A stretch of 63,780 nucleotides of DNA, filler included, from Octopus bimaculoides (Eukaryota), in assembly GCF_001194135.2 (NCBI RefSeq). It is 5 parts of 5 records of this genome, joined end to end, with 100 filler letters (N's around TTAATTAATTAA, not from the genome) between each part and the next. Parts side by side here need not be neighbours in the genome. Positions count along the whole stretch, not along the records: positions 27,407 to 54,546 come from NC_068998.1; 4 more parts are not named here. One strand, given 5' to 3'. Of this stretch, positions 29,179 through 54,281 are shown piece after piece (the stretch's first letter is position 1; every line of letters starts with the position of its first letter). The notes under the pieces are model-generated. The model was not told where the DNA came from, ran no database searches, and worked only from the letters and a program-made list of their open reading frames with translations. Both the position numbers and the translations under genes were made by a program.

Positions 29179-29180
29179 CT
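29179..29180 (-). CDS. Six-Cys secreted protein paralog A, exon 4 (completes TAG stop; rest is 3'UTR)
   Basis: Acceptor cttctttcattacag|AG, conserved in copies B and C. Exon 3 T plus AG gives TAG. AATAAA lies about 110 nt downstream. Confidence 0.7.
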
Positions 29181-29639
29181 CTGTAATGAAAGAAGTGTGA
29201 TCGACATTGTACAACGTATTTTAATTAATGTTATTCTAAAACTGTTTGGGATTGACAATAATACATCACTAACACAAGAAAAGCATAGAATGCATAGCAG
29301 TGACAAAGTGTATTATTAGGAAGTTAAGGAATTCGTTACTACAATGAATGACAAATATACGAAATAATAGTATTGAAGTAATACAATAATGGTCATTATG
29401 TATGTATGTATGTATGTATGTATATGTGTATCTATGCATATGATGGCCGTCCACTCGTAACAAAGGAAATCCATTGCTGACCTCCAGGAACATTGTTCAC
29501 TGTAGTTCTAAATTATATTTTGCATTTGCCGCTGACGTTGGTGGCTAAAGAGCCATAATCTTGAAAATCGTACGCGACTGCAAACATTGCAAACCAACAT
29601 TTCTTCATTCACTACAACATCAGTGCGCTTTCGAGTAGT

Positions 29640-30190
29640 ACGCTTAAATGCTTCATGCAGAACACGTGCTCACACAAAGGTGTCGACCCTCCCCCCTTAA
29701 CCTGTGTTGATGACTGGCATTACTCTGCCAGTCAGTCCCATGCATATCACAGGCCTGTAATGAGAACTTGAAACAGCCCTTAAATCGCAGCCTTGATTTC
29801 TGCTGGATTCTCTTCCCATTAGCAGTTTCCCCATATAGCATCTGTTTAAAGATCCTGCTATCCTTCATTCCTAGTGGAGGCTGGAACATTACAACAGCTT
29901 TGTACAGGCTAATACTGAGTCCAAATGCTTGCAAGAAGCACAAATATGATTGAAATGTATTTGCATGGCATCCACTGTATGAGTAACTAAGTCACAGTCA
30001 TCTGCATAAAGGGTGTCACGAATGAGAGACTGGAAAACTTTTGAATCAGCAACAAGACGACGCAGATTAAGGAAGTGGCCAGAAGATCGATACCTGACAT
30101 ATATTCCCAGAGAACTAATGTTAGCGAAGCATCAGTAAAAGCAGAAACAAAGTACAAAGAAAACTGAGTTGGAGCAAGGAGAGGCACAGA
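29640..30190 (-). mobile_element. RTE fragment inside paralog A intron 3
   Basis: APTQFSLYF...YVRYRSSGHFLNLRRL...IRDTLYADDCDLV, and later KQMLYGETANGKRIQQKSRLRFK. Confidence 0.85.
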
Positions 30191-30549
30191 GACAGACAAA
30201 TCACATATTATTGAAAAATTTAAGTAAACATGGTTTCAGTGATAATATTTTAGAGCAAATTTGAACCCTCAGTTATTTGATACAGAAGAAAACTTATATT
30301 TTAATATGCAAAATCATATTGTGTAATATTTCATCTGGATCGTTATGTTCTGATTTCAAATTCATCATTGTTCAAAACTACACAGCAACATTTTAATTTG
30401 GGTGTCCGTGTTCTTATGAAATGACTTAACCCACCCTTAAAATTTCTGGGTCTGTGCAATTTGTAGGAAAGCATTATACAGCGAATAAAACCACTTCTTT
30501 AAAAGTAAACAATTATCCATTTCTTAATATTCCTGATGTATAAGTTTTG

Positions 30550-30730
30550 ATTACGTTCTGGAAACTTTTGAATTAGCAACAAGTCGGCGCAGATTAAAGA
30601 AGCAGCCAGAAGGTCGATACCTGACATAACTTCGTTTGATAGTAATATCATTGCTTTGATTGATCATATGATGTGTTACGTATCTAACATTTAGAAAACA
30701 TTGGCGGGAAGCTAAGAAGTACAAAGATGT
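30550..30730 (-). mobile_element. Second RTE RT fragment
   Basis: YVRYRPSGCFFNLRRLVANSKV, similar to 30040-30170. Confidence 0.7.
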
Positions 30731-31073
30731 CCATAAATATATACTGCAAGGAAGATATTCTCTATACACACCAAGATGTTATTATTCCATCATGCAAAAA
30801 TAATCATAATTAATTACGGTAACAAAATTTGTGGTATTATTTGAAATGGTAGTTTTAGCGAGAAAGTACGAAAAATATCGACAATAATTCACCATAATAA
30901 TCGCTTCAAATCCTTGTTTACGGTGAATGCGTAACCAGTTTTGTCTCTGAACGTAAACTGGAAATATTTATAAACTTAACAAATTTAATTTCCTTAGTTG
31001 ATAAATATGTAGAATACGAAATGGCATAAAACTTTTGGAAAATATGTAGAATACGAAATGGCATAAAACTTAC

Positions 31074-31162
31074 AGGTGCACATCAGTCTAACCACTGTTT
31101 CGAATATCAGAACACAATAAGCGGATACACCTTCGAAACACTTGACCCACATATCCACACGA
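31074..31162 (-). CDS. Six-Cys secreted protein paralog A, exon 3
   Basis: Acceptor tttttgtcttgcag, donor gtaagt, 89 nt. Encodes (N)RVDMWVKCFEGVSAYCVLIFETVVRLMCT. Confidence 0.9.
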
Positions 31163-31960
31163 CTGCAAGACAAAAAAAAAACATCGGAATAGTTTTGTTA
31201 CAAAACAAAGGGTTACTTTTTGACCGTACGTATATATGTATCTGTGTGTATATATGTGTTTGTGTATGTGTGTATGTGCGTATGCGTGTGAGAGTGTTTG
31301 TGTATGTGGATGCGCGTGCACGCACGCTCGCGTGTGTATGCATGTCAGGAGGAGAGATGCATGTGAATTTGTGAAATTCATTAGCTCAGAGCCGTTACTA
31401 CTATGTGAGGAAGTGGAATCATTTATGCATCTATCTATCTATCTATCTATCTATCTATCTATCTATCTATCTCTCTCTCTCTCTCTCTCTCTCTCTCTAT
31501 ATATATATATATATATATATATATATATATGAAGGAAGGTGTGAAAATGCAATTTTAAAGATGTTTATTCAACTCTTGATCAAAAACACTAATTCAGATT
31601 TCATTTAAATAAGCAACAATATCAAGAACATCTATTGATTGATTTTACTGAGTGCATCACAAAAATATTAGCAACAATTTAATTAATAATGATCAACTAT
31701 ATATCAACAAGTAACTTCTTAAATTAGATAGGGGTCGATATCGAATATCGGTGTGAAATTCAATAAATCTATTTGTAGTAGTAGTAGTAGTAGTAGTAGC
31801 AGCAACAGCAGTTTCAGTAATAGTAGTAGTAGTAGTAGTAGTAGTAGTAGTAGTAGTAGTAGTAGTAGAACGAGCAGGAGGAAAAGGAGCAAAAAGAAAA
31901 AGAGGTGGAAGTGTAAGAGGTGGAAGAGGAGTCCCCAAAAGACTTTATAATGTTCCTTAC

Positions 31961-32060
31961 TTGCAGTATTCCAGATCAGTTCGGGCATAGGGAAACATGT
32001 TATTCGCCTTTCTGCAATATGTCTTAGCCCTATCACTGCAAAATTCTGTCAATGCAATAC
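31961..32060 (-). CDS. Six-Cys secreted protein paralog A, exon 2
   Basis: Acceptor ...gaatatgtag, donor gtaagg, 100 nt. Encodes (G)IALTEFCSDRAKTYCRKANNMFPYARTDLEYC. Phases match exons 1 and 3. Confidence 0.9.
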
Positions 32061-32447
32061 CTACATATTCAGCAAAAGAGAAGAATTCTATTGAACGTTT
32101 CCGTCTTAAAAATCGAAACAATTTATTTCCCTTCTAATTAAACAAAGCGAAAGAACACAAGAACGAGAAATTAGAAAGATAAACATTCGTACGCAAGGTG
32201 AACGCTGCACATCAGTCACTTTAAGGGATACGGTTGATGGGAAATGAGAGAGGTTCTAAGAGTTCTCTGCAGGTCACGATAATAAATATCCATTTTTTTA
32301 CCACGAAAATATTGACTATATGATGCAAAAATCGAAAGCGAACGTCTTCGTAGGTTTTTTTTTTTTTTTCTGAGAGAAATGCAGAAAATAGCTTCATTCA
32401 GTTGAACTTTGAAACACAATGGATGGTACGCAGTCTGCCTTCCTGTA

Positions 32448-52759: not shown

Positions 52760-52985
52760 AGAAATAATCTGTTCTACTATAGGCACAGGGCCCGAAACCT
52801 TTTTTTTAGGTGAAGGGGCAAGTCGATTAGTTTGACCCCAATACGCAACTAGTACTTAATTTATCGACCCGGAAATGATGAAAGCAATGTCGACCTCAGC
52901 GGAATTTCAAATCGGATAGTAAAGACAGACGAAATACCGCTAAGCATTTCGCCCGGCGTGCTAAAATTTCTGCCGGCTCCCCGCC
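52760..52985 (-). mobile_element. Octopus SINE (OR2-like)
   Basis: Similar to 59850-60055 and, in reverse, to several copies in 60070-60680 and 34120-34560 (gctaagcatttcgcccggcgtgcta, aatttatcgaccc). Confidence 0.75.
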
Positions 52986-53163
52986 ATTCTCTACTAGAAA
53001 TAATGCCTTAGTAATGATAATGAAAATGCTATCGTTTCGTTCCCGTTTCTTAAACAGCCTAAGAGATAAGGAATTACATACGTTATTTACATTATTAACA
53101 TTTGACGGATATTTTTTCTCTTCTTGTTTGTTGTTAACACAAAGTTTCGTCGGATATACCATC

Positions 53164-53200
53164 CTGATGATGGCTGGAGAGTATATCAGCCGAAACGTTG
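53164..53200 (+). ncRNA. Minimal hammerhead-like motif inside a hairpin
   Basis: CTGATGA-t-ggctg(gagagtatat)cagcc-GAAAC-GTT. Stem II is a perfect 5 bp and stem III is the palindromic ACGT type. Stem I is poorly supported. Confidence 0.55.
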
Positions 53201-53628
53201 TGTTAAAAACAAACAAGATGAGGACGAATATCCGTCAAATGTAAATAATATAAAGTTATTATCGGTTCCCATTACTTCTTTTGCACGAGAAAATATAATT
53301 GAGTGACGATGCAAATGTCATTCATATATTTTTAATTTCCATAATACGCCAGGTGTATATTCTTCAGAATATTATCAATACACTGGTCCTACTATTGATT
53401 TGTTTTCATTGAGAATATAAATAAGAATTATTCAGTATGCATTAAATGGCATATAACTGGGTATCGTCAGATCGTAATTTTTAAAAACATTTTATATTCT
53501 GTATTTACACATTCAAACTTCTCTCGGCAAAGTTTATGGTTGGTATAGATTTCGGTATATGAAAGGTAGAATATGGCATACAATAAGTGGCATCTTGTTA
53601 GAATATTTAGTGATATACTTGGAAAAAT

Positions 53629-53639
53629 TCAGACAAGAT
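53629..53639 (-). CDS. Six-Cys paralog D, candidate last exon (DLV-stop)
   Basis: Acceptor tttattgacttttgctcag|AT CTT GTC TGA, phase-compatible with exon 3. No sequence similarity to the A-C last exons, so tentative. Confidence 0.45.
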
Positions 53640-53831
53640 CTGAGCAAAAGTCAATAAATTACCATCTAACATTCATGGAATTTGTACGGAAGCGGATACA
53701 CGAAACCCAAGCAAGTTTGCTAATATTCAGAGAAGATTGAGTTTGGAAAGATATTTGTTCTTGTTTTTCGCTAATTCTTAACAATACTTAGCACAACTTA
53801 AGAATATCAATGATATGAAAAATATTCTCAC

Positions 53832-53920
53832 CAGCGCAGAGGGTGTCAATCGCATAGTCAAAGTATTTATGGCACTCTTTGTCTTTCGGTTCCATACAGG
53901 AACGGAACATATGGAGACGC
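53832..53920 (-). CDS. Six-Cys secreted protein paralog D, exon 3
   Basis: Acceptor tttactttttcattccag, donor gtgaga, 89 nt. Encodes (R)RLHMFRSCMEPKDKECHKYFDYAIDTLCA. Same size, phase and Cys positions as A-C. Confidence 0.85.
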
Positions 53921-54181
53921 CTGGAATGAAAAAGTAAATAAATAAGCTGAGTATTTTACTTGACGAAATCGTATTAAAATTTCATTAATTTCAAGAAAAG
54001 TTTTTTTACACAATACAAATATTTTGATATGGAAGGTGTAGAGCGGAAAATCACAGCGCATTACATGCAATTTACTATAAGTATTTTTGACATTTCTTTT
54101 TGCGCAGCTGATAATATCAACCTTTGTGATTCACAAGAATAACTGGGGCAATAGCTAATGTGGTGATAACATATGACATAC

Positions 54182-54281
54182 CTGCAAGTTTTCAGCTTTG
54201 TGTCGACTTTTGGGTAAGTGCTCATGGCATCCAAGCAGATTTTCTCAGCTTTCTCGATACAGCGCGATGACAGAGCAGCAC
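54182..54281 (-). CDS. Six-Cys secreted protein paralog D, exon 2
   Basis: Acceptor ttttaaaattctag, donor gtatgt, 100 nt. Encodes (G)AALSSRCIEKAEKICLDAMSTYPKVDTKLKTC. Same size, phase and Cys positions as A-C. Confidence 0.85.

Follow-up and report, generated by a model that had tools for sequence, protein, structure and literature searches.

A tandem cluster of genes for small, predicted secreted six-cysteine proteins in Octopus bimaculoides, part of an Octopus-restricted family

The Ly6/uPAR proteins occur as glycosylphosphatidylinositol (GPI)-anchored single-domain forms, as multi-domain forms, and as anchor-less, secreted, fast-evolving forms such as the SLURPs and the snake three-finger toxins. 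[quoted passage not shown] RGMs are GPI-anchored (PMC11488336). In mussel, the MgCRP-I genes have four exons and are under positive selection, and their products combine a conserved pre-pro region with a hypervariable six-cysteine mature peptide; synthetic MgCRP-I peptides showed neither toxic nor antimicrobial activity (PMC4558851). Here we analyze a window of 63,780 nucleotides (nt) of Octopus bimaculoides DNA (assembly GCF_001194135.2; five parts joined end to end, with all positions counted along the whole), in which the piece 27407-54546, from NC_068998.1, carries four genes, A to D, for small six-cysteine proteins. We favor, with moderate confidence, the reading that these are four genuine, separately transcribed genes encoding anchor-less secreted mini-proteins, most likely diffusible extracellular ligands or decoys whose binding partner is changing.

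A sequence-only reading of the piece had spliced four peptides by hand. When we mapped these back by tblastn, all 11 claimed exons were found at the proposed positions, all on the minus strand, and the mapping together with the exact exon boundaries bears out the exon coordinates, the sizes and the GT-AG introns. The coding exons measure 46, 100 and 89 nt in every copy (exon 1 of D lies outside the piece), and all introns run from GT to AG, with a polypyrimidine tract before the acceptor. No in-frame stop occurs in exon 3, which is followed directly by a perfect donor, GTAAGT (GTGAGA in D). We suspected that the proposed stop codons had been invented, and this suspicion was dropped once a conserved terminal-exon acceptor emerged. 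When the tandem units are compared, a block of 88-89% conservation stands out downstream, at a distance of about 1.9 kb in A and B and of about 0.9 kb plus a gap in C; it carries the invariant acceptor TTTCATTACAG immediately before the junction. Splicing exon 3 to this terminal exon gives T/AG in A and C and A/AT TGA in B (the slash marks the junction), that is, chains ending in MCT-stop and MCEN-stop, with AATAAA about 110 nt past the stop; the cluster had been given its start at 29179 because the stop of A is completed in the terminal exon. Spliced translation reproduces the proposed peptides A, B and C exactly, including their stops, and the modelling of A-C as four-exon genes is correct. 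For D, a read-through to DLV-stop had been proposed; exon 3 is instead spliced to an exon at 52661, giving ...TLCA-VEPYAAT-stop. The parts of the four genes are as follows.

33824..34299, minus strand: putative promoter and 5' untranslated region (UTR) block of A, with equivalents of 86-91% identity in B (40404-40879) and C (46290-46611)
33778..33823, minus strand: gene A exon 1, ATG and putative signal peptide, 46 nt, donor GTAAGT
31961..32060, minus strand: gene A exon 2, 100 nt, end of the putative signal peptide and Cys1-Cys3
31074..31162, minus strand: gene A exon 3, 89 nt, Cys4-Cys6, end ACC T/GTAAGT
29045..29180, minus strand: gene A terminal exon, acceptor TTTCATTACAG/AG, stop T/AG at 29180-29179, AATAAA at 29070-29065, 3' end approximate
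40358..40403, minus strand: gene B exon 1, 46 nt, identical in database protein P0001
38594..38693, minus strand: gene B exon 2, 100 nt
37931..38019, minus strand: gene B exon 3, 89 nt
35880..36018, minus strand: gene B terminal exon, A/AT TGA encoding ...MCEN-stop, stop at 36016-36014, AATAAA at 35904-35899, 3' end approximate
46244..46289, minus strand: gene C exon 1, 46 nt
45118..45217, minus strand: gene C exon 2, 100 nt
44696..44784, minus strand: gene C exon 3, 89 nt
43625..43760, minus strand: gene C terminal exon, stop T/AG at 43760-43759, AATAAA at 43650-43645, 3' end approximate
54182..54281, minus strand: gene D exon 2, 100 nt, with exon 1 (MMKSVLFLCFVLI-) beyond the edge of the piece
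53832..53920, minus strand: gene D exon 3, 89 nt, donor GTGAGA
52639..52661, minus strand: gene D exon 4, coding part, G/TC GAA CCC TAC GCT GCA ACC TAA encoding VEPYAAT-stop

The cysteine frame C-x7-C-x16-C-x8-C-x7-C-x11-C, which had been called invariant, is exact in A, B, C and D. When all six-frame fragments of the piece are scanned with a family profile, 8 mature-peptide exons are detected, each at E <= 2e-7, and this search finds no further family exon, the next best fragment scoring 0.37. Because the profile finds only those 8 exons, the piece holds exactly four family genes, and chance origin of the exon pattern is excluded by the scores. A, B and C are recent tandem duplicates in units of 5.9-6.6 kb, while D is an older, distant paralogue. 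Our preferred reading is further supported by the independent gene models that exist for B, C and D, and by an exon, intron and stop structure that is identical in the 3 + 1 copies here and in seven copies from O. vulgaris.

Those seven copies form a tandem array at locus L003 of the O. vulgaris assembly OX597831.1, which is free of gaps. They share the order of exons 1 to 3, the 46/100/89 sizes, the phases, the GT-AG sites and the terminal-exon acceptor, which reads CTTTACAG/ATTGA and leads to ...MCID-stop. One copy, Ov4 (exon 2 at about 58120 of L003), has a 1-nt insertion in exon 2 that shifts the frame, and is probably a pseudogene. The region from D to C is collinear between the species at 77-90% identity, and because of this C and the O. 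vulgaris copy Ov1 are positional orthologues. Collinearity also identifies the true O. vulgaris orthologue of D, a gene of 83 amino acids (aa) at the start of L003; protein P0004, considered as this orthologue, was rejected as a paralogue, since its synonymous divergence (pS) is 0.78 and the introns cannot be aligned. The copies group by species in a neighbour-joining tree, a sign of lineage-specific duplication or concerted evolution. Intron 3 is about 1.9 kb long in A (31073-29181) and B (37930-36019) compared with about 370 nt in most O. vulgaris copies (L003, about 47596-47966). No homology was found between the extra intron 3 sequences of A (30820-29394) and B (37700-36231), and independent insertions are therefore suggested. 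The O. vulgaris annotation merges the seven genes into a single 82-kb, 373-aa model (CAI9735829; L003 10001-91858), which is partly out of frame, and gives none of them an annotation of its own.

The mature-peptide exons of the array have diverged 1.5-2.7 times faster than the non-coding DNA that flanks them. Pairwise identity among A-C is 91-94% in exon 1, 69-86% in exon 2 and 60-80% in exon 3, and it is 79-96% (mostly 82-91%) in the promoter, introns and 3' exon. Exons 2 and 3 together differ by 16.9, 29.1 and 35.4% in the three A-C pairs, whereas their non-coding flanks, over 1.75 kb, differ by 11.2, 12.8 and 13.1% (Fisher p = 0.02, 4e-8 and 4e-13). Between C and Ov1 the mature exons differ by 32.8% versus 20.5% for adjacent non-coding DNA (p = 5e-4), and exon 1 by 8.7%. 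Young O. vulgaris pairs have 15-20 nonsynonymous (Nd) against 0.5-1.5 synonymous (Sd) differences, for example 15.5 against 0.5, and several such pairs give a dN/dS of 3-8 on tiny counts. From the contrast between exons and introns we infer positive selection, which is not established by codon counts.

It is hardly credible, and largely refuted, that the genes are non-functional remnants, decaying duplicates or prediction artefacts. A ratio of nonsynonymous to synonymous change (omega) of about 1, the frameshift in Ov4, and the fact that A is unannotated and has an inverted copy of its exon 1 would all fit such a reading. However, 9 of the 10 copies keep the frame, the splice sites, the stop arrangement and all six cysteines, structure and synteny are kept across two species, and independent annotation pipelines called B, C and D. 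In a neutral simulation at the observed substitution load, all six cysteines in the nine intact copies were kept in none of 20,000 runs, and runs in which no stop codon arose made up 0.6% (P = 0.006). Neutral decay is excluded by this simulation.

By inspection, the N-terminus of the encoded proteins has a basic n-region, a hydrophobic core of 12-13 residues and a c-region of small residues ending 2-3 residues before Cys1; other members show a similar cleavage pattern ahead of Cys1 (..AMS/EYC, ..AIS/EFC). The hydrophobic N-terminus, a putative signal, and the six invariant cysteines that the sequence-only reading had described are present in these small proteins, with exon 1 of D outside the piece. 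If cleavage is taken to occur two residues before Cys1, following the family pattern, the mature proteins A-D have 58-65 aa, 6.6-7.6 kDa, a pI of 7.8-8.8 and a net charge of +0.8 to +3.7. An AlphaFold2 model built with 4 sequences reached a predicted local distance difference test (pLDDT) score of 64, and the fold search on it was uninformative. With 49 domain copies the model reached pLDDT 94.7 and a predicted template modelling (pTM) score of 0.80, and it forms a three-helix bundle, in agreement with the helical peptide proposed before. The modelled helices span residues 2-18 (kinked at Cys2), 25-39 and 44-57 and carry two cysteines each; presumably, one disulfide links each pair of helices. 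A-D are almost certainly disulfide-stapled three-helix mini-proteins, and probably secreted.

Nothing similar has been found among known folds. Foldseek searches of the PDB gave nothing significant, with best E-values of 2.6 and 3.3 for the 4-sequence and 49-copy models (21 hits with the latter), and PDB searches by sequence and with a small profile returned no match. The peptides had been placed outside attractin, CHH/ITP, saposin, insulin and ShK, and there they stay: Pfam gave no hit to these for A-D (E <= 10) or for the 33 family members described below (E <= 1), and no PDB or fold match was seen. A fold match to NK-lysin (E 6.7) appeared with the low-confidence model and was gone with the high-confidence one. 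Weak Pfam matches to DUF5332, DUF1397, NPR2, Cofilin and others involve at most two members each and were treated as noise. As small, secreted, disulfide-stabilised products of tandemly duplicated, fast-evolving genes, the peptides could also serve host defence as antimicrobial peptides released into mucus or haemolymph. We regard this as quite improbable, since the mature peptides are weakly basic (the charge and pI given above) and not markedly amphipathic-cationic, they resemble no known antimicrobial family, and MgCRP-I sets a precedent without antimicrobial activity (PMC4558851).

The four genes are present as claimed, but what had been taken for a family of four is only a corner of an Octopus family of at least 33 clusters. 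Word-indexed searches gave only two matches per query. An exhaustive HMMER profile search, which covered 1.84 billion representatives, returned 33 proteins (sequence clusters) at E <= 1e-3, of which 18 reach E <= 1e-10. All named members come from O. bimaculoides, O. vulgaris or O. sinensis and are labelled "uncharacterized", with one exception, a 322-bp contig (L005 1-322) in a "Campylobacter fetus" assembly (GCA_016612925.1). This contig is mRNA-like, with a 5'UTR, an ATG, an uninterrupted 82-aa open reading frame (ORF) containing a signal peptide and the six-cysteine domain, a TAA and a 3'UTR, and is probably contamination from some animal. In O. bimaculoides there are at least 25 loci (LOC128249757 to LOC128249895) on the same 55.6-Mb chromosome as the piece, and two multi-domain family genes on a different one. 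The 7/16/8/7/11 frame is almost invariant over about 60 domain copies in the 33 clusters, with minor length variation. They have a common core, A..YP..PD..YC.RL......C.......C..YF, in which P or T stands before D, L or V after R, and F or W at a further fixed position. About half of the members end with a Ser/Thr-rich linker and a terminal hydrophobic stretch without a cytoplasmic tail, which is the layout of a predicted GPI-anchor signal, and other members contain 2-9 tandem copies of the domain. A-D stop 1-8 residues after Cys6 and, because their chains end there, represent a soluble, anchor-less branch. The family is real and undescribed, but familiar in kind, being a lineage-specific cluster of secreted cysteine-rich peptides.

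These observations bear on what A-D may do. We suggest that a cleavable signal peptide would release a mini-protein of 58-65 residues without a membrane anchor, and that this diffusible binding module derives from an anchored cell-surface family. The domain would be a rigid binding scaffold, in which the six cysteines and the core (A, YP, PD/TD, YC-x-R-L/V, F/W) are fixed and other positions are free. Since this scaffold is fixed and the mature exons outpace the neighboring DNA, A-D would most likely act as diffusible extracellular ligands or decoys for a partner that is itself changing. Candidates for this partner are molecules of prey, pathogens or mates, or whatever the anchored paralogues bind. 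What the data show is the gene structure and how it is kept between species, membership of the family, a confident predicted fold and the difference in rates; secretion itself, how the cysteines pair, action by binding and what is bound are inferred.

Several points weigh against this reading. Over the mature region, tree-wide parsimony gives an omega of 0.97, and the value of 1.33 in the O. vulgaris clade is not significant (p = 0.22). Synonymous divergence in the mature-peptide exons is also high, and gene conversion homogenising the non-coding DNA, or local mutation bias, could add to the contrast between exons and flanks. Gene A carries the inverted exon-1 copy, spans a gap of 707 N and is the sole copy without a database protein. 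Literature searches by accession, LOC identifier and topic did not find a paper describing the family, and exact-protein contig look-ups for transcripts came back empty for C and D and found B, P0004 and P0036 in genome contigs only.

The fast mature exons, the conserved signal exon and the invariant cysteine scaffold are the classic signature of toxin genes. A-C could therefore be venom toxins of the posterior salivary gland that act on ion channels or receptors of prey, with the array diversifying in an arms race; the small, disulfide-rich peptides and the difference in copy number, three here versus seven in O. vulgaris, would suit such a role. We nevertheless consider it unlikely. The GPI-like cell-surface layout of most relatives points to endogenous cell-surface biology, such a family is unmentioned in the octopus salivary-gland papers found (supplements not searched), and MgCRP-I has the same signature without toxic activity (PMC4558851). 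Another proposal is that the proteins are reproductive or conspecific signals, such as water-borne or contact pheromones or egg- or sperm-associated ligands, under sexual selection or species recognition. The grouping of copies by species, the fast divergence of the mature region between species, and the small, helical, three-disulfide type, which also occurs in Aplysia attractin and the Euplotes pheromones, are in line with this. However, no similarity in sequence, Pfam or fold to attractin or other known pheromones was found, and we find this proposal improbable too.

The only recurrent similarity to a known domain, a weak and local one, is to the N-domain of RGM. Pfam RGM_N (PF06535) is matched at E < 1 by 13 of the 33 members, while any other Pfam family is matched by at most two. 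Protein B scores 12.9 bits (E 0.14) against RGM_N; in the same Pfam scan A, C and D have no RGM_N hit. Single domains score 10-15 bits, short of the curated gathering cut-off of 24.2, and only the four-repeat protein P0008 exceeds the cut-off, its 37.9 bits being a sum over four repeats. With a profile of 50 family domains, RGM N-domain chains (from RGMB or RGMB/RGMC entries) take the first four places among the PDB hits, at E 0.025-0.16 and over 24 residues. Aligned with RGM by hhalign, the family reaches a probability of 57% (P = 1.1e-4) over 33 columns, the RGM alignment consisting of three vertebrate sequences only. The similarity is confined to the 24-33 residues from Cys3 to Cys5. The RGM N-domain has the frame C-x4-C-x22-C-x8-C-x7-C-x21-C, which we verified on 4uhz_B (human RGMB) and 4uhy_C (RGMA), so that only the central x8/x7 spacing is shared and the three outer spacings differ. 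No RGM chain is among the 21 Foldseek hits of the pLDDT-94.7 model, and no RGM_C or VWD hit was found by Pfam in any of the 33 members. Thus, the RGM link is a candidate remote relationship suggested by sequence comparison, not membership.

It has been considered whether A-D are stand-alone, RGM-derived RGM-N-like domains that bind BMP/TGF-beta-type ligands, the anchored members being co-receptors and A-D soluble modulators. The recurrent RGM_N matches, the PDB and hhalign results, the six cysteines of each with an identical central C-x8-C-x7-C, and GPI anchoring in RGM beside GPI-like tails in many members speak for this. Against it stand the short match, the sub-cut-off scores of single domains, the summing over repeats in P0008, the outer spacings (7/16/../11 versus 4/22/../21), the lack of RGM in the fold search, of a vWD-like or RGM_C region and of any RGM_N hit in A, C and D. 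We judge such a role doubtful. Rather unlikely, too, is a wider scenario, in which an undescribed, Octopus-restricted structural class of disulfide-stapled three-helix mini-proteins possibly came from an RGM N-domain, grew to dozens of GPI-anchored surface proteins, and then lost the anchor to yield tandem, fast-evolving secreted ligands (toxins or chemical signals). If true, it would be a cephalopod parallel of the transition from Ly6 to three-finger toxins, and RGM proteins would no longer be the only ones with an RGM-N-like domain. A genuine RGM link would illustrate the co-option and multiplication of a conserved signalling domain. Venom, chemical communication, immunity and endogenous (possibly BMP-type) modulation are all candidate roles for the diffusible ligands we propose.

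In the databases, the family called unrecognised by the sequence-only reading is indeed uncharacterised and undescribed, but B, C and D were already deposited and only A is unannotated. For C, UniProt has an entry of 100% identity, A0A0L8GPT8 ("Secreted protein", 78 aa; P0002), D is an 83-aa UniRef entry (P0003), and A has no database protein; the entries for B, C and D are all uncharacterised. B matches NCBI LOC128249859 through ...MCE, where the NCBI model, of 115 aa, has an extra cassette exon:

36793..36856, minus strand: B-specific cassette exon, only in the 115-aa NCBI model, 64 nt, ccag/AG..GT/gtaagt, shifts the frame of the terminal exon

The cassette has good splice sites and adds a basic tail (..DRSKRIKRKTSV..). 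It sits in a stretch of intron 3 that B alone has, A, C and every O. vulgaris copy lacking it, and because of this restriction the short form of B is the ancestral structure. The cassette appears either to have been exonised recently or to be an artefact of gene prediction. Two database names of family members are likely automatic mis-annotations. UniRef names D [quoted passage not shown]. The CHCH/twin Cx9C class has two Cx9C motifs in a helix-turn-helix and consists of cytosolic proteins imported into the mitochondrial intermembrane space, whereas D has spacings of x7, x8 and x11 and a putative N-terminal signal peptide, and no Pfam hit at E <= 10. The name "GDNF/GAS1 domain-containing protein" of A0A0L8GPX5 (P0009) was rejected as well, as this protein hits no Pfam family at E <= 1, none of the 33 members matches PF02351, and the name is at odds with the cysteine spacing.

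The piece 27407-54546 is AT-rich (34.7% GC), with many microsatellites and without long ORFs. It is 100% identical to O. bimaculoides chromosome CM046618.1 (GCA_001194135.2), 50262112-50286545; this record has identical N runs and is not an independent check on the gaps, which are the following.

32770-33476: N run of 707 N, within intron 1 of A
45885-45894: N run, within intron 1 of C
44189-44331: N run, within intron 3 of C
35111-35203 and 42152-42216: N runs, intergenic

The exons are untouched by all five N runs, three of which are intronic and two intergenic. Microsatellites are the usual cause of breaks in short-read assemblies, and four of the five runs adjoin one detected by Tandem Repeats Finder (TRF); the run at 44189-44331 is bordered by dinucleotide-type repeats, as judged from ORF translations. 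Both sides of every gap are collinear and co-oriented with the other tandem units, and gene B is gap-free from ATG to stop (40403-36014). Trinucleotide arrays of 21-31 copies occupy an equivalent place near the start of intron 2 in each of A, B and C, as (GTA)n in A (31775-31868) and B (38441-38503) and as (GCA)n in C (44907-44992), and another array of this kind, (AGT)31, occupies 27558-27650, close to where the piece ends. Intron 1 of A contains an inverted 100-nt copy of exon 1 and its 5' splice site (32448-32547, plus strand), 99% complementary to 33713-33812. A second, partial exon-1 copy lies at 32737-32769 (plus strand), and a 289-nt tandem duplication (32359-32769) repeats part of this region and reaches the contig end at the 707-N gap. 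Neither B and C nor any of the O. vulgaris copies has this inverted copy. Either it is an artefact of assembly, or the inverted duplication is real and would fold into a long pre-mRNA hairpin covering the donor of exon 1.

Lineage-specific gene expansions are a well-known feature of cephalopod genomes, yet few have been tied to structure or function. The family described here is tractable in this respect. This is because at least 25 loci lie on one chromosome, the fold is confidently predicted and has no solved counterpart, and members are split into anchored, multi-domain and soluble forms, including a soluble array whose peptide part outpaces its introns. Should the soluble members turn out to act in venom, as pheromones or in immunity, marine peptide pharmacology would gain a new scaffold. 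Annotation also gains, as A is unannotated, seven O. vulgaris genes are fused, and the CHCH Cx9C and GDNF/GAS1 names are unsupported.

The described systems resemble the octopus genes in different ways. Conotoxin superfamilies and MgCRP-I, which are tandemly duplicated genes for secreted cysteine-rich peptides, have the same evolutionary mode as A-C, with short exons, a conserved signal exon (91-94% here), six invariant cysteines, a mature region that outpaces non-coding DNA, four-exon genes and a lineage-restricted expansion. There is, however, no relation in sequence or fold, as the octopus family is all-helical and not of the knottin/inhibitor cystine knot (ICK) type. Moreover, unlike in conotoxins and MgCRP-I, the canonical octopus isoform has no propeptide or dibasic site, its mature domain is split over two exons, and most relatives are predicted to be membrane-anchored. 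The likeness to Ly6/uPAR, in which one small disulfide-rich domain is likewise used in anchored, multi-domain and secreted tandem forms, is an analogy only, since that fold is a beta-rich three-finger structure, in contrast to the three-helix bundle modelled here, and no Pfam or fold hit links the two. Attractin and Euplotes Er differ from the octopus family in their cysteine frames, and the family gives no attractin Pfam hit and no fold hit to either. The RGM N-domain (PF06535; PDB 4UHZ, 4UHY, 4UI1, 4BQ6) has, like the octopus domain, six cysteines in about 55-70 residues, and the local motif D-x2-[YF]-C-x-[RA]-L-x5-C is common to both. RGMs are GPI-anchored, as many octopus members appear to be, whereas A-D are anchor-less. 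In RGM the N-domain is followed by a vWD-like autocleaving region and RGM_C, neither of which the octopus family has. Finally, RGM is a low-copy, conserved bilaterian gene, while the octopus family is restricted to Octopus and massively duplicated.

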